The notes under the pieces were generated by a model. That model was not told the origin of the DNA. It made no database searches and saw only the letters and a program-made list of their open reading frames with translations. This document shows, piece after piece, positions 14,282 through 55,232 of a stretch of 64,000 nt of DNA. Where the stretch lies: positions 1 through 64,000 of the IMG/VR virus record IMGVR_UViG_3300017917_002466. One strand, written 5' to 3'. The position numbers were made by a program, and so were the translations under genes. Every line of letters begins with the position of its first letter. Within the stretch, counting starts at the first letter, position 1.

Positions 14282-14938
14282 TTATGAACGATTTCCAAAT
14301 AATCCTGTCATTGCTCCAATTCCTGCGGCAACTGCATTTTGCTTTGTAAAGATTGTAGACATTCTATCACATCCGAAAGTAAGACTTCTCTTAATACTTT
14401 CATTACTTGTATATGAATAACTTGCTTCAGAAGCTTGCAAAAAGTAAATATCGTGAAACGTATAGTAAACAACTGGAATGCCCATCTTATCTTGAACTTC
14501 TACTACAAAGGCTTTAATTTTCGCCTTATTAGGTGCATTGTAATATCCACTACTATCTATAATATTTCTTTGATTCCAATTTATAAAGTATTCAACATTA
14601 CCCTTTTCATCTTCTTCTAAGGTAACATTAAAATTGAATCCTTCAAATTTTAATACTGGAAAACTTCTTGGAACCTGACCATACATCATTACGACTTTTT
14701 CAAACTCGTATGTCGGAATTGTAACGTCAAGAATATGGAATGGTTGTATGACAGGAGGCATTTCAATCTGTCTTCCAACAGTTACTCCCTGAAAAGGATT
14801 ATAGATAAACAATCCAAAGAACTGCCAGTTTCTTTGAATGGATTTGCCATAAGCACTTTCGGGCTGCCTAAAGTATCTTTGAAGCTCTAATCCGTTTACG
14901 CCTATTGGCATTTTATCGGCTCCCTTGTTACTTTCCAT
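14282..14938 (-). CDS. Tail tube-like protein (gp54/gp19 paralogue)
   Basis: Tube-fold pattern (DVTIPTYEF...YYTFHDIYFL...YSYTSNE..SLTFGCD); downstream of gp19. Confidence 0.6.
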   Translation of the reverse strand: MESNKGADKMPIGVNGLELQRYFRQPESAYGKSIQRNWQFFGLFIYNPFQGVTVGRQIEMPPVIQPFHILDVTIPTYEFEKVVMMYGQVPRSFPVLKFEGFNFNVTLEEDEKGNVEYFINWNQRNIIDSSGYYNAPNKAKIKAFVVEVQDKMGIPVVYYTFHDIYFLQASEASYSYTSNESIKRSLTFGCDRMSTIFTKQNAVAAGIGAMTGLFGNRS

Positions 14939-15576
14939 CCTTTATATACTTTGCCACTTCTAATATGTCTCAACAAAGTCGTTTCATTGAAATTCTTGAA
15001 GTGTTTGCAGATTTCATCAGCACTTATAAATCTAAGATATTGATTAAATCCTTCTAATATGTATTTATACTTTGCCTTAGATAGCTTTATCTTTTGGATA
15101 CTTTCTTTAGAATGTTTGATTCCCATTCTTGGACTATCTTTTCCTTTTTTACCAAACATTGAATTTTTACTTCCTAATTGTGCATTTGAAATTTTTAGCT
15201 TAGTTTCTTCTGAATGAGGCCCGTTTGATTTTCCTAAATGAGATTTACTCATCTTCTTTTTATCTTCTTTAGTAAAACGGTAACCTCTTATAGAATGACC
15301 ACCTTTAGTATCATTATAGCCATTATTATAGGTATCATAAAAGCTTATCCAATGTACTTCTCTTTCATCAAGAGTTTGAAGATTATTAATACCATCTTCA
15401 ACAATATTCCAAACGAATTTATCAAATCCGTATTGAACAATAGCTTTATGAAAACGGGTTTTTTGATATTTAAAAGCTTCGTTACGGTGTTTGTTTTTAC
15501 GATATTCTAAAGAATTAACTGTCTGACCAATATAAGATTTATCATTGATAATATTTGTGGCTTTATAAATAAGCAT
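14902..15576 (-). CDS. GIY-YIG homing endonuclease (Seg-like) with NUMOD3-type repeats
   Basis: MLIYKATNIINDKSYIGQT, EREVHWI, GYNDTKGG, HSEETKLKIS; start set to ATG 15576 after AGGAGG. Confidence 0.9.
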   Translation of the reverse strand: MLIYKATNIINDKSYIGQTVNSLEYRKNKHRNEAFKYQKTRFHKAIVQYGFDKFVWNIVEDGINNLQTLDEREVHWISFYDTYNNGYNDTKGGHSIRGYRFTKEDKKKMSKSHLGKSNGPHSEETKLKISNAQLGSKNSMFGKKGKDSPRMGIKHSKESIQKIKLSKAKYKYILEGFNQYLRFISADEICKHFKNFNETTLLRHIRSGKVYKGWKVTREPIKCQ

Positions 15577-15580
15577 TAAC

Positions 15581-15664
15581 AACCTCCTGATAGGTTAAAA
15601 AATAAAGTGGTAATCCTTACTTATCAGGTTTCAGGAAAAGGGTGGCCACCCTCTGTCCCACTTT
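15581..15664 (-). ncRNA. Structured leader, HEG-associated motif copy 1 (three-way junction plus RBS hairpin)
   Basis: AAAGTGG-GACAG-AGGGT ggcc ACCCT-TT-TCCT gaaaCCTGATAagta AGGA-TTA-CCACTTT, then AACCT atcagg AGGTT. Confidence 0.7.
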
Positions 15665-15672
15665 TAGTTTTA

Positions 15673-16221
15673 TTATACTAACTCCCAAAAATCAAATTGC
15701 CAGGTTACGTCATACTTAACGGATTCGTTACCACCATAAGCCATAGTAACGTCACCTATGTTCTGGATAAAACAATTGTAGAAGCGAATCTTTTTCTCAA
15801 GTGGTGCACCATTATAAGCATACATAAGTAAGTAAACATCTTTTGCCACATCTCTCTTTTTTGGTCTAAGAGACTGACCACCAGTTGGGTCATTTGGGCT
15901 AATATTATAAATCAAATTCTGCCAGAATGTCAATGCTTTGTGAACAATCTGGTTTTCAGTTTCTTCAATATTAACCGCAAATGTGGAACCAAAAGTTGGT
16001 TTACCAGGAAAGTATTGCTTCATACCAATAAACTCACTAGTAATAGGTTCATTACCGCGAGAAGGTATGACTACTGACCTTGCACGAATAACCAAGTCTT
16101 CTACATCACCCATTATTCCACCCGTTACATCTGCAATGGACGGAATCAAAAGCTCCCACATCCAGTTACGCTGAATGTCAGGTAGTTGTTTTGCTCTGCC
16201 TTCTATTGTAAAATTTGGCAT
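15673..16221 (-). CDS. gp19: Tail tube protein
   Basis: Follows sheath; QRNWMWEL, YFPGKPTFGSTFAVNIEETE, YDVTWQFDFW. Confidence 0.9.
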   Translation of the reverse strand: MPNFTIEGRAKQLPDIQRNWMWELLIPSIADVTGGIMGDVEDLVIRARSVVIPSRGNEPITSEFIGMKQYFPGKPTFGSTFAVNIEETENQIVHKALTFWQNLIYNISPNDPTGGQSLRPKKRDVAKDVYLLMYAYNGAPLEKKIRFYNCFIQNIGDVTMAYGGNESVKYDVTWQFDFWELV

Positions 16222-18393: not shown

Positions 18394-19533
18394 TTACACC
18401 AAATCTTCATCCATAATAGCTGAAGGCTGCCAACTAGGATCACCTAAATCTTCCTGAGCATTAATTGCCTGAACTTCGTCTTCTTCTTTTCCTTCTTCCC
18501 ACTTACCTACTTGTACATTATACTCATCTTCTACATTCTTGGTTTCATAACTTTTTCCATTATAATCTTCTGTAGAAACAAAATATAAAGCCCAAAGTAA
18601 TGCTGTTACACAGTCATCGTGTTCGTGCCTTCCTGCCGCAAAAACATTTGGCTTAATTTCTTCAAATCTACTAAGTTCATAGATTGTTGGTTCGTCACAT
18701 ACTCTAATTCTATCTTTTTCAAGATATTCTTTAAGTAACATATTAGCTTTGAGTTTAGACTTTCTTGTACTTCTAACTCCTAAAGCATTTGGGTCTAAAT
18801 TAATCAAGTCCTCATATTCAAACTCGTGCCAAATTGTATCTGCTACAGTTCCACCAATATCATTGTTTTCAACCATCATATGGGCATTATTATAGAACTT
18901 GGCGACTGATACACATATCTGTGCAAAGTCTCTTGGATTAATCATATTGTTTCTGTAAATTGCTACTTGTTCAATATCATATTCATTTTTAATCCAAAGG
19001 ACTTGAATAACTGAATAATCTTTTCCTATTCCTTTACCAGTATCAACACCAAGCACATATTCTCCGCCGTGAACTGGTTGTCTATAAATTGACAAAAGTC
19101 CATTCCATTTGGTTGCGATTGGGTCTTTAAACTGAATTCTTTCAAGAACGTCCGAATCAATAAGAGTTGATTGACTTCCAAGAAATTTACAATTTTTACT
19201 TATAATATTATTTGTATAATAAGAATTATCAGAAGAATTAACTTGAAGTAATGTATAAACTTTTTCTTTCTTTTTATTCAATTCTATTTTAACTATTTCT
19301 TTTAAACCATTTTTTGTTTCAAGTAAATCGCCTTCAAGAAGATATTTTGATTGTTCTTCATTACCATTTATAATAAAAGTATGGTCAGTAGATACTTCAA
19401 TAATATTCTCATCTTCTAAAGTAAATTTTAAAATTTGAACTTTTTCTAAAACCTCACCGATACCAGCAAAAGTTTTAAAACCTTCAGGTGTTTCAACTTC
19501 AAAGTTTGATATAAATTTAGTTTTGGTTTTCAT
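18394..19533 (-). CDS. gp17: Large terminase C-terminal (nuclease) part fused to split-intein IntC
   Basis: First 114 aa intein-like (STDH block B; VYTLLQV...YYTNNIISKN/C), then CKFLGSQSTLI, YVLGVDTGKG.GKDYS, HDDCVTAL. Confidence 0.92.
   Translation of the reverse strand: MKTKTKFISNFEVETPEGFKTFAGIGEVLEKVQILKFTLEDENIIEVSTDHTFIINGNEEQSKYLLEGDLLETKNGLKEIVKIELNKKKEKVYTLLQVNSSDNSYYTNNIISKNCKFLGSQSTLIDSDVLERIQFKDPIATKWNGLLSIYRQPVHGGEYVLGVDTGKGIGKDYSVIQVLWIKNEYDIEQVAIYRNNMINPRDFAQICVSVAKFYNNAHMMVENNDIGGTVADTIWHEFEYEDLINLDPNALGVRSTRKSKLKANMLLKEYLEKDRIRVCDEPTIYELSRFEEIKPNVFAAGRHEHDDCVTALLWALYFVSTEDYNGKSYETKNVEDEYNVQVGKWEEGKEEDEVQAINAQEDLGDPSWQPSAIMDEDLV
19192..19533 (-). other. Split intein C-fragment (114 aa), ends Lys-Asn, +1 Cys
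   Basis: Hint-domain blocks B, F and G visible in the translation. Confidence 0.85.
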
Positions 19534-20518
19534 TCAATTTTTCCATAAATTGTTTTTCAGTTAAATAGTTTTTAGCCGAATTTATTTTACGAGAACAAAT
19601 ACATAAGTTTTTAAAAGAACCTATTTCTCTCGGATCAATCTTATTTACAAATCCATAATAAACAGAAATTTTATGGTCAATAGTTGGTTGCATAGAATTA
19701 GTATTAAAATGTCTATGATCTATTTTTTCATATTCTAAATTTCCAACTAATTTTTCTCCAGTATAATAATCATATCCATCAAATATTCTATAAACTCTAA
19801 TCCTATGTTTTAAAGTTTCATTTCTAACTAAAGACCAATATTTTTCATATTCAGTTTTAATTTTTCCAATCAACCATTTACCATTTTCTTCGTTACTTTT
19901 TCTTATTTTATCATAAACCCAATCTAATTGAGTATTCCACTCTACACCATATTTTTCTAAACAAGTTTGTTTTCTTTTATTTAAAATTATATTCAATTCT
20001 TCTTCAGTTAAATTTCTCCAAAATTTTTTTCTCTTTTCATTAATTTCTTTTTTATTTTCATTCAAAACTTTCCATCTAGCTTTAATACAAGACTTCATTA
20101 AAAAATTATGACTAACTCCATATTTTTCCTGAATAGTATTACTTTGTTTATTTTTGACATTTTCAACTTCCATAACATTATCGGCACCATATTTTTCTAA
20201 ACAAGTTTGTTTTCTTTTATTTGCTTCTTTTTTAACATCTCTTATTTCAAAAGATTTTTTAATTTTATCTCTAACATATTCTGATTTTTGTTGATGTTTT
20301 AAGCAACAAAATTTAGCATAACCTTTATTGTATCCATAAAATTTAGTTTCTTTTCCACAATATAAACATTTTCCTTCGTCTTCTTTTTTAATATGTTTAT
20401 CATAATATTCTTGTAAACTTATATTATGTTTTATTTTAAGATGATATTGACTAAAACTAATAATAGTTAAATTAGTTTGAATATTACATTCTTTACAAAA
20501 GAATTTTTCTTTTTCCAT
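19517..20518 (-). CDS. Free-standing HNH homing endonuclease with N-terminal Zn finger
   Basis: CKEC...HLKIKH, CLYCGK, KQTCLEKYG repeats, TIDHKISVYYGF...NLCICSRKINSAK. Confidence 0.85.
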   Translation of the reverse strand: MEKEKFFCKECNIQTNLTIISFSQYHLKIKHNISLQEYYDKHIKKEDEGKCLYCGKETKFYGYNKGYAKFCCLKHQQKSEYVRDKIKKSFEIRDVKKEANKRKQTCLEKYGADNVMEVENVKNKQSNTIQEKYGVSHNFLMKSCIKARWKVLNENKKEINEKRKKFWRNLTEEELNIILNKRKQTCLEKYGVEWNTQLDWVYDKIRKSNEENGKWLIGKIKTEYEKYWSLVRNETLKHRIRVYRIFDGYDYYTGEKLVGNLEYEKIDHRHFNTNSMQPTIDHKISVYYGFVNKIDPREIGSFKNLCICSRKINSAKNYLTEKQFMEKLNENQN

Positions 20519-20543
20519 TTTTGACTCCTTTATAAATAAAATT

Positions 20544-20604
20544 TAGAGGGACATATAGGAGATTTGACTCGCCTATCGCAGAACGCCAATTCTGCTTACC
20601 TCTA
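20544..20604 (+). ncRNA. HEG-associated motif copy 4, inverted relative to the HNH gene
   Basis: TAGAGG-GACAT-ATAGG agaTTTGACTCg CCTAT-C-GCAGAA cgccaa TTCTGC-TTA-CCTCTA; TATAAATA at 20531-20538 (+) and 20606-20613 (-). Confidence 0.6.
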
Positions 20605-20706
20605 TTATTTATATTTTTTACTTTTAAAAAATTCCCCAATTTCAATATTTTTTTCTACTTTCATCTTTATATCTCTAATATTTATAATAGTTTGTGAATT
20701 AGCGCA
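20605..20706 (-). other. Split intein N-fragment (33 aa, starts Cys)
   Basis: Block-A-like CANSQTII...IGEF after the extein EFQ. Confidence 0.8.
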
Positions 20707-23001: not shown

Positions 23002-23167
23002 TTAATTTTTTCCAATTTTATTTTTAAATTCTTCTTCTGTCATATAATTTTTTACACTATTAGTACTTCTACTACAAATACATAAATTATTTATGAGTTT
23101 GATTAATATGAGACATTAAACCTTGTAAACTTTTACATTCTTTTCTGCAAATCTTACAAATTTCCAT
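23002..23167 (-). pseudogene. Internally deleted Zn-finger/HNH endonuclease remnant
   Basis: MEICKICRKECKSLQGLMSHINQTH joined out of frame to NNLCICSRSTNSVKNYMTEEEF, matching both ends of 19517..20518. Confidence 0.8.
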
Positions 23168-23172
23168 AATTT

Positions 23173-23244
23173 ACCTCCAACTAGGTTAAAAATTGGGATA
23201 ATCTTTTGAGTTGGCAAAAGAAACGCCCGTCGGCGCTGTCTCCC
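23173..23244 (-). ncRNA. HEG-associated motif copy 2
   Basis: GGGA-GACAG-CGCC gacg GGCG-TT-TCTTTTG ccaact CAAAAGA-TTA-TCCC, then ACCT agttgg AGGT. Confidence 0.7.
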
Positions 23245-23251
23245 TCTATAT

Positions 23252-24001
23252 TTATCTTCCCATTCCCGGTATAACCATTGGGTTTGAAGCCTTTTTCTTA
23301 AAATTCATTTTCTTATCCATTAACATTTGAACAAAAGGTTGAAGACCTGCTTCTCCATTATCTGTTGAAATGATTTCTTGTATCATTGACTTGAAATGTT
23401 TCCAATCATCAAAGTTTCCTGATTTACTCTGATCTGCAATCTCAAGTTGCTCTAATGCCTTTTTTAAATAGTCAAGAGCAGCTTTTCCTGCAAATATTTC
23501 ACTTATATTTGAGTCTTGACCAAGAACTGATTCCTTAACAGGTTTTTCTGTTGAAGTTTCTTCTTTGCTTTCATCTTCTGGTTTATCAGTTGTATCAGCC
23601 TGAGCTTCTTCCTTTGTCTTATGAATAACACCGGCCTTATGGTTTGGTGGTGCATAGATAGTATAGACTTTAAGTCCCTTATCGTCTGCAATAACATTAT
23701 GCTTTGAACCGGCGGGAACAACAAAAGCAGAACCGTCTTTAATTTCTGTTTCTTTTCCGTTAATAACTACCTTTCCAGAACCACCATCAACTCTAAAAAA
23801 CTGATCTACCTTTTCGTGTGTTTCTTCCCCAATATCTTCATTTGGATTTAAAGACATTAACACAAGCTGAAGATGTTCTCCAGTAAAAATATCTTTACGA
23901 AAGTTGGTATTATCAGTAGTATCCTTCTCAATATCAACTACAATTCCCTTTGGTTGTTCTTCTGCTGCTTCTGCTTCTTTAACAAAATCTTTGAATGACA
24001 T
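23252..24001 (-). CDS. Cupin-domain protein with capsid-targeting-like N-terminus
   Basis: LQLVLMSL..EDIGEETHEKVDQFFRVDGGSG...VVPAGSKHNV cupin motifs; begins MSFKDFVKE. Confidence 0.8.
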   Translation of the reverse strand: MSFKDFVKEAEAAEEQPKGIVVDIEKDTTDNTNFRKDIFTGEHLQLVLMSLNPNEDIGEETHEKVDQFFRVDGGSGKVVINGKETEIKDGSAFVVPAGSKHNVIADDKGLKVYTIYAPPNHKAGVIHKTKEEAQADTTDKPEDESKEETSTEKPVKESVLGQDSNISEIFAGKAALDYLKKALEQLEIADQSKSGNFDDWKHFKSMIQEIISTDNGEAGLQPFVQMLMDKKMNFKKKASNPMVIPGMGR

Positions 24002-25890: not shown

Positions 25891-26583
25891 TTATTCTCCT
25901 AAAAATTCATTAAGTTGAATTTGATTATTTCTTTTCTTACCATAAATTTTATGAAATTGTTTATGGCAATGATTACATAAACAAATTCCATTATCAAAAT
26001 CAACTCTTTTATCTTTATTTGAAACAAAATTCTCAATATGATAAGCTATTAAAGTTCCATCATATCTTTCACCAATATACCCACATTTTTGACAAGTAAA
26101 ATTATAATTTTGTAATATTGTTCTTTTCCAACGGTCATATCCATTAATTGATCGACCTTTAATTCTTTCTTTATAACTCAATTTTATTTTTCTTTTTATA
26201 GATTTTTCTATTGCTGAACAATCCAAACATCTTACTGAATTATAAGTAATCTTTTTTCCACAATCTTTACAATAATGTTGTTTAATAGAAACTCCATTTC
26301 TCCATTGTCTATTTCTCTCACCAGAAGTTGCACACTTAACACAAATATTTCTATATTGATAAAATTCTAATTCTGAAATTTCACCACATACATCACATTT
26401 TCTTAAAACTTTAGCTTTAGATTTTGGAAGTAAATCTTTTATACTAACTAAAATAATAGTTCCGTTTTTAATATACCATCTATAACTACTATCTTTATAT
26501 CTTGGAATTTCATAACCAAGACCTTCATAGTGTCTATAATTGCGGCCATTAATACTTACTTCAACTCTATCAGATAGTATCAT
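25891..26583 (-). CDS. HNH homing endonuclease
   Basis: Several CxxC; FTCQKCG...AYHIENF...DNGICLCNHCHKQFH. Confidence 0.8.
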   Translation of the reverse strand: MILSDRVEVSINGRNYRHYEGLGYEIPRYKDSSYRWYIKNGTIILVSIKDLLPKSKAKVLRKCDVCGEISELEFYQYRNICVKCATSGERNRQWRNGVSIKQHYCKDCGKKITYNSVRCLDCSAIEKSIKRKIKLSYKERIKGRSINGYDRWKRTILQNYNFTCQKCGYIGERYDGTLIAYHIENFVSNKDKRVDFDNGICLCNHCHKQFHKIYGKKRNNQIQLNEFLGE

Positions 26584-27104: not shown

Positions 27105-27110
27105 TTTTAA

Positions 27111-27167
27111 AGTAGAGATAATCTTTGTGTTGGCAAAGAAAAGTTAATTACTCCCTGTCTCTCTACT
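27111..27167 (-). ncRNA. HEG-associated motif copy 5
   Basis: TATAAATA (27172-27179), then AGTAGAGA-GACAG-P2 (G-U rich)-TCTTTG ccaaca CAAAGA-TTA-TCTCTACT. Confidence 0.7.
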
Positions 27168-27204
27168 TATGTATTTATACTTGAATGACTTCTGAACGCA
27201 AAAT

Positions 27205-27260: not shown

Positions 27261-28640
27261 TTACCATCCACGAACAGCAGTAGAAATTCCAGAAGGAAGA
27301 TTACTGGTTGTTGCACCCGGGATAAGCTTATTAACATTGTAGAACGGAATCAATCTGTAATAACGTCCACTACCAAGCAATGTATCGGTGATAGCATATC
27401 TGCTCATAACACCAATTCTTGGTGTGAAGTCAGCAGGGTGAATTGCCCTATTGGTAAGACCCATAATATAAGGACTGAAGATAATACCACAGTCACTGAT
27501 ACCATTGCCTTTGTAACCAATCAATGCATACTCTGTACGAGCATATTGATCACGATATACGTCCATTGTTCCATTCAACTTACCAATTGCGGCCATAACC
27601 TGAGTTGGGTTAACATTCTGGTTATAGTTGACAAAGGTATGTCCAGCAGCTTGAAGTGCAGTTGCAATCGCAGGAGATACGATAACAAAGTTACCTGGAC
27701 CTCTACGAGTTGTAACAGCAATCTTATTGGACTGATAGACAATTGCGCTAATGATGTTCATGTACTTTTCACCAGACCATCTTCCGTCGATACCAGTGGA
27801 GTTTACACCACCAGTAAGGTCAACGGCACCGATAACCTCTCCACCATTATTGGTGTTGACGGCTGCGGCCTTCATTCTGGCAATAAGCTCTCTGTCAAGC
27901 TCAGCAGTAACCTCGTACTGAAGGAACTGAACCATTTCCCTCTCAATGTCAATACCGTGCATAGCCTTTACGTCCTGAGCCGCTTCAAGGCTGAAGCTAG
28001 CTGCAAGCTTTCTGGTCTTAGCAGTAATTGCAAGCTGGTCAATTCTCATTCTAAGTTGAGGCCAGTCACCACAACCATTAGCAGACTCAGCAGTATCACA
28101 AGTGTTTGCGATAGTCCACGTTTCACCGGCGGATGTTGCAACACCTGTACCAGATGTATCATATACTCCAGTATCAGCAGAACTATTGTTCCAAGAACCT
28201 TGCAATATGCCAGATGTTCCAACCTGATTACCAGTGTATCCACCGTATTCAGGAACCTTATCCCAAGCAGCTTCATTTCCATTACCATCATCGTAAACAA
28301 CTCGCATAGCATAAGCAAGTCCAACTGGTGTTGACATTGCCTGCACGCCTACGACCTTGTTTGCGAAAAGGTCAGGGAAAGTACGTCTGACAAGGGCAAG
28401 GGCGATTGGTCTGAAAATCCAAGAGTCAGAAGCTGCGGCACCATCGGTGAATCCACCCATATTACCATAGTTCATATTACCCTGAGAAGTTTCAGTTAAA
28501 ACTTCCTGTCCGTTAAAGTCCTTTCTCTCTTGATTCTCCAAAAGAGTTGCAAGGTTTTCCTTAACGTATCTGTCCTTAATGTCCTTAATAGACATCTTAC
28601 CTTCGGCAGATTCCCATTTCTTAATTAGTGAAAGACTCAT
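27261..28640 (-). CDS. gp23: Major capsid protein
   Basis: LALVRRTFPDL.A..VVGVQAMSTPVGLAYAMR, TAKTRKLAASFSLEAAQDVKAMHGID, FTPRIGVMSRY. Confidence 0.97.
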   Translation of the reverse strand: MSLSLIKKWESAEGKMSIKDIKDRYVKENLATLLENQERKDFNGQEVLTETSQGNMNYGNMGGFTDGAAASDSWIFRPIALALVRRTFPDLFANKVVGVQAMSTPVGLAYAMRVVYDDGNGNEAAWDKVPEYGGYTGNQVGTSGILQGSWNNSSADTGVYDTSGTGVATSAGETWTIANTCDTAESANGCGDWPQLRMRIDQLAITAKTRKLAASFSLEAAQDVKAMHGIDIEREMVQFLQYEVTAELDRELIARMKAAAVNTNNGGEVIGAVDLTGGVNSTGIDGRWSGEKYMNIISAIVYQSNKIAVTTRRGPGNFVIVSPAIATALQAAGHTFVNYNQNVNPTQVMAAIGKLNGTMDVYRDQYARTEYALIGYKGNGISDCGIIFSPYIMGLTNRAIHPADFTPRIGVMSRYAITDTLLGSGRYYRLIPFYNVNKLIPGATTSNLPSGISTAVRGW

Positions 28641-51359: not shown

Positions 51360-51387
51360 ATAATTAGACAAAATATGAATGATTTTT

Positions 51388-51413
51388 TATAAATACTTCT
51401 AAAGGAGAGAAGT
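51388..51413 (+). promoter_or_regulatory. Late promoter overlapping an RBS hairpin
   Basis: TATAAATA, then ACTTCT-aaaggag-AGAAGT; second TATAAATA at 51355-51362. Confidence 0.7.
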
Positions 51414-51418
51414 TAGTT

Positions 51419-52318
51419 ATGAAAAATCTTATAAAACAATTTCAAAAAGTTCATGGAAATAAGTATAATTATGATAAAGTAGTTTATAATAATTGTAGAA
51501 CTAAAATTTGTATTATTTGTCAAGAACATGGAGAATTTTGGCAACTTCCACTCAATCATAGAAATGGTCAAGGATGTCCAGATTGTGGTAAAAAAGACCA
51601 AGTTAGGCAAGTTCAAAATGAAGAATTTATTCGACGATTAGTAGATAAGTATGGAAATCAATATAATTTTGATAAAACTATTTTTAGAGGTACTAAAAAA
51701 AGAATAATTGTTACTTGTAAACAACATGGAGATTTTGAAGTTTTTCCGTTTAATTTCCTTAAAGGAAAAGGTTGTCCAAAATGTGTAAATGAAAGAGTTA
51801 GTAATGAAAGAAGGAATGATTTTGATAAAATAGTTCAAAAATTTAATAAAGTTCATAATTTTAAGTACGATTATTCAAATTCAGTCTATCAAAATTATTG
51901 TAAGAAAATTGAAATTATTTGTTCAAAACATGGTTCTTTTTGGCAATCAGTCTCAGACCATATAAAAGGAAGAGGTTGTCCAATTTGTAAAAGCTCTAAA
52001 GGAGAAATTATTGTTAGTAATATTTTGCTTAAAAAACAAATTGAATTTATTCCACAAAAAAGATTTGAAGAATGTAAATTATTTAAACCATTGGCGTTTG
52101 ATTTCTTTTTACCAAAAAATAATACTTGTATAGAATATAACGGCATTCAACATTATGAATCTTTAGATTATTTTGGTGGAAAACAAGAATTAGAAGAAAT
52201 TCAAAAAAGAGATGCTATTAAAATTAAATTTTGTAAAGACAATAATATTAAGTTAATAATAATACCATATTGGAAATTGGATGAAATTGAAAATATTTTA
52301 AAAGGATTTTTATTATGA
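51419..52318 (+). CDS. Putative homing endonuclease (Zn-module repeats plus Vsr/EDxHD-like)
   Basis: Paralogue of 32345..33349; LAFDFFL...IEYNGIQHY. Confidence 0.8.
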   Translation: MKNLIKQFQKVHGNKYNYDKVVYNNCRTKICIICQEHGEFWQLPLNHRNGQGCPDCGKKDQVRQVQNEEFIRRLVDKYGNQYNFDKTIFRGTKKRIIVTCKQHGDFEVFPFNFLKGKGCPKCVNERVSNERRNDFDKIVQKFNKVHNFKYDYSNSVYQNYCKKIEIICSKHGSFWQSVSDHIKGRGCPICKSSKGEIIVSNILLKKQIEFIPQKRFEECKLFKPLAFDFFLPKNNTCIEYNGIQHYESLDYFGGKQELEEIQKRDAIKIKFCKDNNIKLIIIPYWKLDEIENILKGFLL

Positions 52319-53375: not shown

Positions 53376-54575
53376 ATGGAAAATCAGCAGCAAATTCCTA
53401 CCAGTAATTACGAAGTGTTTAGACAACATTTGTTGAATCCAAACACAGCTTTTGAACTTTCTGTCCAAGAAGGACAGATAATGAAAATTCAAAAAAATTT
53501 GGTAATATCTTACGTTTCGGATTCGACGGGATGTGGCCACATTAGAAACATTTTTCCAATGACATATCTGAATTCTATTTTTGGAAAAACCGGAAGATTC
53601 AATATCATCATATCACCAGTTATGCTTTTCCAACACGATGTTCTTTTGAGAACAAGAAGTATTTTCTTCCAAAGAACTATGGCACCTGGACATATTCAAG
53701 CTGTCAAAATGTACAAGGATGCACAGAAGAAATACGGATTCAAAATGGTCTACGACATTGACGACTTCATTTGGGATGGTCCGGATGAAGGAGAAACTAT
53801 TCCTCCGTATAACTTTGGAAAAGATGGAATCACACCAGAAGTTCAAAAATCTTCACTTGAAATTATGAACGAAATGGACGTTGTATGTGTCTCGACAGAT
53901 TTTCTTGGACAGTATATTAGAAATCACGGAGTAACAAATCCCAAGATAATTACAGTCTATAATGCTGTTCCTCAATACTTCTGGGGGCCTCAGAGAAAGA
54001 AGCCTATTAAAGAAAAATTGAAGAAGCCAAGAGTTATTTACACTGGAAGTCCCACTCATTATCATCAAATGAAAAAATTAAAAGGAGACTGGGAAAATGC
54101 TTGGTGTGAATGGGTTATCAAAAACGTGGAAAATGGTAAGATTGAGTTTTGTTGTATGGGTGGTCTTCCTTTCTTCTTTGAAGGAATCAAAAATAAAATC
54201 AAAATAGTTGACTGGGTCAACTCATATCAGTATCATCTTCCAATCAAGGATTTCCGTGCAGATATTGGAGTTGCGCCGCTTGTACCAAACTATTTCAACT
54301 ATAGTAAGTCCGATATTAAACATATAGAGTATTGCGCTCTTGGAATCCTAAGTATAGGAACTGTATTTACAAATGGAAGGCCAAGCCCTTATGACAATAA
54401 CCTTCTAAAAGTCCCGAACAACTGCTCTGTACAAGATATAGACAGACTTGTAGACGAATATACAGAACCAGAAAATTACAATAGAATCATTAAACAGCAA
54501 TATGAAATATTGGATAAAACCGGGAGGTGGCTTGAAAGCCCCGAATATGTCAAGATGATTACAGAAATTTTATAA
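53376..54575 (+). CDS. Glycosyltransferase (GT-B-like)
   Basis: GCGHIR, YDIDD, YTGSPTH, DIGVAPL..N.FN..KSDIK.IEY. Confidence 0.75.
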   Translation: MENQQQIPTSNYEVFRQHLLNPNTAFELSVQEGQIMKIQKNLVISYVSDSTGCGHIRNIFPMTYLNSIFGKTGRFNIIISPVMLFQHDVLLRTRSIFFQRTMAPGHIQAVKMYKDAQKKYGFKMVYDIDDFIWDGPDEGETIPPYNFGKDGITPEVQKSSLEIMNEMDVVCVSTDFLGQYIRNHGVTNPKIITVYNAVPQYFWGPQRKKPIKEKLKKPRVIYTGSPTHYHQMKKLKGDWENAWCEWVIKNVENGKIEFCCMGGLPFFFEGIKNKIKIVDWVNSYQYHLPIKDFRADIGVAPLVPNYFNYSKSDIKHIEYCALGILSIGTVFTNGRPSPYDNNLLKVPNNCSVQDIDRLVDEYTEPENYNRIIKQQYEILDKTGRWLESPEYVKMITEIL

Positions 54576-54585
54576 ATAATTTTAG

Positions 54586-54669
54586 AGTATGTTAGGACAG
54601 GGAGGCATCCTTTTCTGACACGAACAGAATTACTGACATACTTCTTTCAAATACCTTATTCGTGGAGGT
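54586..54669 (+). ncRNA. HEG-associated motif copy 3
   Basis: TATAAATA 54571-54578; AGTATGTTAG-GACAG-GGA ggca TCC-TT-TTCTG acacgaa CAGAA-TTA-CTGACATACT; ACCT tattcgtgg AGGT. Confidence 0.72.
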
Positions 54670-54673
54670 TCCT

Positions 54674-55232
54674 ATGAGTTGCTTTATTATCTACAAAACT
54701 ACGTGTCTTGTTAACCAAAAAATCTATGTTGGTCAGCATAATACTTCAGCTAATGATGGTTATTTAGGCACTGGAAAAATAATCAAGTTAGCCATTAGAA
54801 AGTATGGCAGAAAAACTTTAAAAGAGAAACAATAGAGTTCTGTACTTCTGCTAACGTAAACGAAAGAGAAGTTTACTGGGTTGGTAAGTTAGATTCTACG
54901 AACCCTCAAATCGGTTATAACATCACTAGAGGGGGAGATGGTGTAATAATTGTTGGTAGAAATAATCCTATGCTTGGAAAAAACAAAGTCAAAATTCAAG
55001 AAATTTGATGAGTTTAAATCATCAAGATTTTAATGGAAAGTTAAATCCAAGATACGGAAAAGGAAAATACCTTTATATTTTTTCATCCAAAGAAAAAAAT
55101 ATTAAAACTAAAAGTCTCACTGAATTTTGTAAAAATCAAAATCTTAATTTGAATACACTTAATTGGTGTTTTAGAGTTGGTCGAAAATTTCATAAAGGGT
55201 GGGAAATTAAAAGAATCTTGTTAACTTCTTGA
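54674..55232 (+). pseudogene. GIY-YIG (Seg-like) endonuclease with two frameshifts
   Basis: MSCFIIYKTTCLVNQKIYVGQH..GYLGTG / NFKRETIE..EREVYW..GYNITRGG / ..LMSLNH..; both shifts in A runs. Confidence 0.8.

Follow-up and report, generated by a model that had tools for sequence, protein, structure and literature searches.

Organization of the leader at the locus

The region examined lies on the minus strand of a 64,000-nt stretch (referred to here as the window), which is the first 64 kb of a 253,664-bp IMG/VR record (IMGVR_UViG_3300017917_002466) with terminal repeats and a G+C content of 33.5%. It lies in the 85-nt gap between a Cupin_2-domain gene and a 26-codon open reading frame (ORF), and a T4 gp15-like tail sheath stabiliser gene follows. 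The gp15-like protein is only about 25% identical to those of cultured cyanophages, and the phage thus is a very divergent T4-like virus. Read 5' to 3', the RNA consists of a three-way junction (P1, the trinucleotide GAC, P2, P3, and UUA), a short linker without G, and a 4-bp hairpin (P4) that carries the Shine-Dalgarno sequence GGAGG, with the AUG following five bases after P4. P2 is a G+C-rich hairpin that opens with A-U and G-U pairs, and P3 has the stem UCUUUUG/CAAAAGA. The P3 loop (L3) is the exact complement of the P4 loop (L4), and the Shine-Dalgarno sequence is split between L4 and the P4 stem. The coordinates of all features are collected in Table 1.

The short ORF is what remains of a larger gene. 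Its product is 72% identical over 25 amino acids to the start of a protein of at least 448 amino acids, and a related phage has an intact 289-amino-acid gene at the same site. Thus, the copy examined here is a leader left in front of a deleted nuclease gene.

Table 1. Coordinates of the leaders and neighboring features (window coordinates unless a contig or the genome, G000, is named)
Feature	Position	Strand	Description	Support
Cupin_2-domain gene	23252..24001		Upstream of copy 2	Domain match
Copy 2, promoter-like box	23249..23256	-	T4-type late-promoter-like box GATAAATA; overlaps the TAA stop (23252-23254) of the Cupin_2 gene	One mismatch to TATAAATA; ends 4 nt before P1
Copy 2, whole leader	23173-23244	-	First base of P1 to last base of P4
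Copy 2, three-way junction	23195..23244	-	P1 GGGA 23241-23244 with UCCC 23195-23198; J1/2 GAC 23238-23240; P2 hairpin 23222-23237; P3 hairpin 23202-23221; J3/1 UUA 23199-23201	Model R1, 52.9 bits, E 2.7e-11; helix covariation
Copy 2, L3	23209..23214	-	CCAACU	Complementary to L4
Copy 2, linker	23187..23194	-	AAUUUUUA, G-free and A/U-rich, between P1 and P4	Linkers G-poor in all instances
Copy 2, P4 hairpin	23173..23186	-	ACCU-AGUUGG-AGGU; L4 (AGUUGG) 23177-23182; GGAGG 23174-23178	Loop-loop duplex -7.8 kcal/mol; P4 alone -3.2 kcal/mol
26-codon ORF	23087..23167	-	N-terminal stump of a DUF7487-type (PHROG 'homing endonuclease') gene	72% identity over 25 aa
Copy 1 leader	15582..15664	-	P1 AAAGUGG 15658-15664 with CCACUUU 15604-15610; GAC 15655-15657; L3 core CCUGAUA 15622-15628; target UAUCAGG 15586-15592; TATAATAA box 15670-15677	R1, 51.6 bits
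Copy 1, P3	15614-15636	-	GAA...AGUA flanks around the pairing loop
Gene served by copy 1	14902..15576	-	GIY-YIG + NUMOD3 homing endonuclease gene	Pfam
Copy 3	54571..54669	+	TATAAATA 54571-54578; P1 54585-54595 with 54633-54643; GAC 54596-54598; P2 54599-54612; P3 54613-54629; L3 CACGAA 54619-54624; target UUCGUG 54659-54664 inside ACCU...AGGU (54653-54669)	R1, 52.4 bits
Gene downstream of copy 3	54674..55232	+	GIY-YIG gene in two pieces (54674-54835 and 55005-55232)
Relic fourth copy	27107..27179	-	TATAAATA 27172-27179; intact three-way junction 27107-27171	R1, 72.5 bits
gp23-like capsid gene	27261..28640		On one side of the relic, a 128-aa ORF on the other
HNH endonuclease gene	25891..26583		About 520 nt further on from the relic
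Relic copy elsewhere in the genome	G000 159849-159913		No gene
DUF7487-type endonuclease gene	19517..20518		Preceded by TATAAATA and a different branched leader
Different branched leader	~20519-20625	-	No GACAG core; octamer GAGUCAAA
T4-type layout	~51385-51418	+	TATAAATA followed by a small hairpin, upstream of 51419; also G000 ~59730 and ~205800
Group I intron	L204:1123-1454		Enterocloster phage CB457P1 (OP172753.1)	Rfam RF00028, 93.6 bits
TnpB-type genes behind the leader	L199:8512-9712, L199:10928-11208, L157:252-1510		OrfB_IS605 plus Cas12f-like TNB domain, in viral contigs

Distribution of the leader

The initial annotation had reported that three copies of the motif in the window each kept perfect complementarity of 6 to 7 bp between the P3 loop and a hairpin at the ribosome-binding site, always adjacent to GGAGG, despite having three different sequences. 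This observation was correct: all three pairs were present on the strand of the downstream gene, and each target abutted or overlapped GGAGG 7 to 9 nt before the ATG, while shuffles of the window gave an expectation of 0.00 to 0.02 such matches. All three copies share the same three-way junction with different helix sequences.

To find further copies, a simple descriptor and then a covariance model (R1) were used. R1 was built from the junction only and excluded the Shine-Dalgarno region, since MAFFT alignments of full leaders were out of register past P3; a full-length model (R2) was built from four well-aligned copies, and the remaining sequences were aligned to it with Infernal. R1 identified 17 copies in the genome, four of them in the window. 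One of these four is a relic with a promoter box and an intact junction but no complementary target, Shine-Dalgarno sequence, or nuclease gene directly downstream. On the 16 copies first aligned, 91.7% of cells were paired and 18 of 21 pairs showed compensatory changes, which none of 500 shuffles reached.

Pattern scans of viral contigs followed by the model gave about 50 further contigs of many sizes and G+C contents. Additionally, the motif was present in five cultured Enterocloster phages, directly upstream of a gene annotated as I-TevI-like, and in a few contigs of metagenome-assembled genomes (MAGs), mostly Clostridia. A general gapped pattern in viral contigs returned almost only chance matches (3 true among the 80 listed loci that were searched), and of 33 pattern matches in bacterial and archaeal genomes only 9 were true by the model, the rest fitting the roughly 17 expected by chance. 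No match was found in 150 sampled genomes of the class of one carrier MAG, a sample of limited sensitivity that is not proof of absence. R1 found nothing in SPO1, P-SSM2, or Twort and nothing at an E value of ≤1 in T4, and in Aeh1 it gave only a 15-bit hit at chance level. A megablast search of the region against GenBank phages also found nothing.

No Rfam 15 family matched the element. Searches gave no hit at the gathering score on the window, none at an E value of ≤10 around copy 2, and none at an E value of ≤5 on 17 loci holding copies, with only noise at permissive values. A hammerhead, pistol, hatchet, HDV, or tRNA-like identity was rejected because no model matches and the core differs. 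Similarly, the motif is not part of a group I intron: the copies in this genome lie between ORFs, and in Enterocloster phage CB457P1 the group I intron ends about 35 nt before the leader and its I-TevI-like gene. Thus, the leader also serves intron-associated endonucleases. Full-text literature searches found no description of the element. A bulk catalogue of candidate structured RNAs from IMG/VR (PMC10690425) uses the same data source and could contain this motif as an unnamed candidate, and its text describes no motif linked to homing endonucleases.

Covariation of the loop-loop interaction

Because the search model did not include the downstream region, complementarity there is an independent test of the interaction, and its absence from homologous copies had been named beforehand as an outcome that would count against it. 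The P3 loop was defined from a stem anchored at the junction, as picking it from minimum-free-energy folds failed for long P3 loops. With this definition, 52 of 60 nonredundant instances from many phages had at least 6 nt of perfect Watson-Crick complementarity within 45 nt downstream, whereas permuting the partners gave a mean of 5.0 and a maximum of 15 in 5,000 trials. The bases flanking the target formed a stem of at least 4 bp in 71% of instances, compared with 8.6% at random positions, and many different stem sequences occurred, for example, ACCU/AGGU, AUCU/AGAU, ACUC/GAGU, and CUUU/AAAG.

On an Infernal alignment of 55 distinct sequences made with the full-length model, which has no kissing helix, 94.2% of cells of the whole structure were paired, compared with 64% in shuffles and 46 to 57% when partners were slid. 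Compensatory changes were seen at 29 of 31 pairs, and none of 500 shuffles reached this. The kissing helix, written as a pseudoknot, was 80.3% paired, and all six of its pairs changed on both sides; all five helices covary. RNAalifold recovered P1 to P4 on the same alignment. Additionally, a related phage carries the orthologous leader upstream of its gp15 gene with both sides changed together, CCAACC/GGUUGG instead of CCAACU/AGUUGG.

About 14 core positions were invariant or nearly so while the helices varied freely: GAC, the A-U and G-U pairs at the base of P2 (68 of 68 rows), the U-A and C-G pairs at the base of P3, and UUA or UAA. However, much of the external sample was collected with a pattern based on P2, and conservation of P2 in that sample therefore says nothing. 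The invariant G-U pair in P2 and the constant orientation with the gene point to RNA rather than DNA.

Downstream genes and promoter

The genes downstream of the leader are almost all selfish nucleases. In this genome they are GIY-YIG+NUMOD3, HNH(+NUMOD3), and DUF4379/DUF723 zinc-finger nucleases or their truncated remains. Besides the broken GIY-YIG gene behind copy 3, several other leader-associated genes are stumps of 15 to 43 codons that still keep the loop-loop complementarity. Elsewhere, the downstream genes encode GIY-YIG, NUMOD1/3/4, I-HmuI-like, HNH_3, LAGLIDADG_3, OrfB_IS605/Cas12f-like (TnpB), DUF7487, and DUF723/DUF4379 proteins, families that PHROGs labels homing or HNH endonucleases. 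One weak non-nuclease exception looked DnaD-like. Not every nuclease gene carries the leader: of roughly 21 nuclease-like ORFs in the genome, about 12 have it and about 9 lack it, and others use a T4-style arrangement of late promoter and hairpin or a different fold. At 51419, TATAAATA is immediately followed by a small hairpin (ACUUCU-aaaggag-AGAAGU) holding the Shine-Dalgarno sequence, and two strategies therefore coexist in one genome.

A TATAAATA box (at most 1 mismatch) ended 3 to 12 nt before P1 in 16 of 17 copies, and in other phages a TATAAT-like box often sat at the same place. In T4, transcription starts about 6 nt after the late-promoter box. By this rule, the RNA is inferred to start at or one base before P1 and thus to contain the whole fold.

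Interpretation

The interpretation in the initial annotation, a kissing-loop or pseudoknot translational switch, was partly supported. The structural part is strongly supported, since L3 and the loop of a short hairpin carrying the Shine-Dalgarno sequence covary to stay complementary and the P4 stem covaries too, so that the ribosome-binding site is base-paired in the conserved fold. The comparison made there with the cobalamin riboswitch, which noted that the B12 box is lacking, is apt as a mechanism. However, the word "switch" was not supported by anything that we could test. The annotation also missed that the motif is a three-way junction, that it is a leader specific to homing endonuclease and other selfish nuclease genes, that it starts at a promoter, and that copy 2 now precedes only a gene stump.

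We consider it most likely, with a probability of roughly 0.6, that this is one copy of a conserved cis-acting mRNA leader that travels with selfish nuclease genes in phages and acts as a portable, self-contained translation attenuator. In this view, the RNA starts at its own promoter, a T4-type late promoter in this genome, and folds at once into the three-way junction, in which P2 and P3, joined by 0 to 1 nt, probably stack into one rod and P1 closes and insulates the module. The 6- to 7-nt P3 loop would then kiss the loop of the weak P4 hairpin about 10 nt downstream. Together the two helices pair the whole Shine-Dalgarno sequence, with the first GG in the kissing helix and AGGU in the P4 stem. 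This would mask the ribosome-binding site whatever the insertion site, and the potentially harmful endonuclease would be made only at a low level, from rare opening of the kiss. The G-free A/U-rich linker could serve as a standby site for 30S subunits, and the 5'-terminal P1 helix could protect the mRNA end. Our analysis establishes the fold, its covariation, the gene association, and the position of the promoter, whereas translational repression, its constitutive nature, and the standby and stability roles are inferred from sequence alone.

Nearest-neighbor estimates fit attenuation rather than a complete block: the kissing duplex (-7.6 to -9.8 kcal/mol) plus P4 (about -3 kcal/mol) is roughly equal to the duplex of the Shine-Dalgarno and anti-Shine-Dalgarno sequences (-10 to -11 kcal/mol). 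Additionally, structures masking the ribosome-binding site have precedent at I-TevI, mobE, and segB (PMC3014915). Other observations fit less well. A simple hairpin would be enough to mask a ribosome-binding site, and the strict conservation of GAC, the A-U/G-U base of P2, and UUA across very different phages therefore is not explained by this model and hints at a further partner. The promoter lies upstream of the whole fold, so no route to derepression is visible. About 9 nuclease-like ORFs in the same genome do without the leader, and one weak downstream gene is the DnaD-like non-nuclease. In three Clostridia-phage GIY-YIG instances (contigs L156, L179, and L143), the masked site lies 17 to 20 nt before the annotated AUG and a second AAGG lies nearer the start, and the masked element may therefore be a standby site or an upstream Shine-Dalgarno sequence rather than the functional one.

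The conserved junction keeps open a regulated version, although we regard it as unlikely. In this reading, the junction is the sensor of a riboregulator that binds a small molecule or a phage or host protein, which stabilizes or disrupts the kiss so that nuclease synthesis follows a signal such as replication state, nucleotide pools, or coinfection. The presence of conserved unpaired core nucleotides within covarying helices, the parallel to the cobalamin kissing loop, and the use of one leader by at least six unrelated nuclease families, as would be expected of a shared sensor, are consistent with this. However, the junction has only about 6 to 7 unpaired nucleotides, no Rfam aptamer matches, and no ligand candidate emerges from the gene context. 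Only the platform in which the kiss involves the Shine-Dalgarno sequence was seen in about 60 instances, also in Clostridia phages, and no conserved alternative helix was noticed, albeit without an exhaustive search. If this reading is true, the element would be the first shared RNA control device for mobile nuclease genes (homing endonucleases of several folds and TnpB) across unrelated phages, timing nuclease synthesis during infection.

Two further alternatives are less likely still. As in type I toxin mRNAs, the primary transcript could be inert until an endonucleolytic cut in the A/U-rich linker detaches the junction, upon which the kiss falls apart and frees the ribosome-binding site. 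A G-poor, single-stranded A/U/C linker of 8 to 15 nt always separates P1 from P4 and the kiss has only 6 to 7 bp, but there is no evidence of cleavage, the linker sequence is not conserved, and the mechanism would need compatible RNases in very different hosts. In the classical T4 scheme, documented for I-TevI and gene e (PMC3014915), read-through early or middle transcripts carry the inhibitory structure, while late transcripts start inside it and are translated. The TATAAATA boxes and the presence of this layout at other nuclease genes of the same genome, for example, upstream of 51419, are in its favor, but from the position of the boxes late RNAs would contain P1 to P4 entire, and a TATAAT-like box takes the same place in other phages. 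Finally, a DNA-level element (a repeat, recombination site, or nuclease target without RNA function) is very improbable, since, despite the many copies in one genome and the relics that persist without a gene, pairing is kept through compensatory changes while the sequence diverges, G-U pairs that would be C-A on the other strand are invariant or frequent, and the element keeps the orientation of the downstream gene and involves its Shine-Dalgarno sequence.

Comparison with known systems

The closest systems in function are the hairpins that sequester the ribosome-binding sites of phage homing endonuclease genes (T4 I-TevI/II/III and segB; Aeh1 mobE), in which a cis RNA structure pairs the Shine-Dalgarno sequence, associated with a T4-type late promoter and presumably serving to limit endonuclease synthesis (PMC3014915). 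Those are simple local hairpins that are not conserved between genes and have the late promoter inside the 5' arm, so that late transcripts lack the inhibitory strand. In contrast, a conserved three-way junction plus kissing loop is shared here by at least six nuclease families and many phage lineages, and the promoter lies upstream of the whole fold. In the cobalamin riboswitch, the L5-L13 kissing loop likewise joins a structured 5' domain to the loop of a hairpin carrying the ribosome-binding site and so blocks initiation, but the present element resembles it in geometry and mechanism only: no B12 box or cobalamin model match was found, the core is far smaller, no ligand is known, and the loop sequences vary freely rather than being conserved. 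In the fully paired complexes HIV TAR-TAR* and ColE1 RNA I-RNA II, two hairpins with 6- to 7-nt loops pair every loop base to give a quasi-continuous stacked helix. The two loops described here are also complementary over the whole 6 to 7 nt, but those complexes form between two molecules or are engineered, whereas here both hairpins sit in one mRNA leader and the second holds the Shine-Dalgarno sequence. The SAM-II, preQ1-II, and guanidine-III riboswitches also draw the Shine-Dalgarno sequence into a tertiary pairing with an upstream loop; they are H-type pseudoknots with conserved ligand pockets, none of which matched, and the pairing sequence here is hypervariable.

Homing endonucleases and TnpB nucleases are abundant selfish genes in phages, and little is known about how they are kept from harming their carrier beyond a few T4 hairpins. 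A single portable leader shared by at least six nuclease families and many phage lineages suggests a common solution, or a common signal, for controlling them. The leader also marks free-standing nuclease cassettes and their relics in metagenomic phage genomes, represents a compact natural kissing-loop module, inferred to act on translation, with freely reprogrammable loop sequences, and is a well-supported candidate for a new Rfam family.

Additional features of the leaders

A conserved (U)GUCAAG box lies 12 to 14 nt upstream of TATAAATA in six copies of one subfamily (genome positions 112541, 148583, 158820, 171364, 186754, and 189326) and may be part of the mobile cassette or a further promoter element. 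In P3 of copy 1 and about 10 other instances, the conserved GAA...AGUA flanks around the pairing loop resemble a loop-E/sarcin-ricin module, a resemblance of sequence only. In the different branched leader of the DUF7487-type gene at 19517..20518, the octamer GAGUCAAA occurs both in a hairpin loop and at the Shine-Dalgarno sequence, and there the two occurrences are identical, not complementary.
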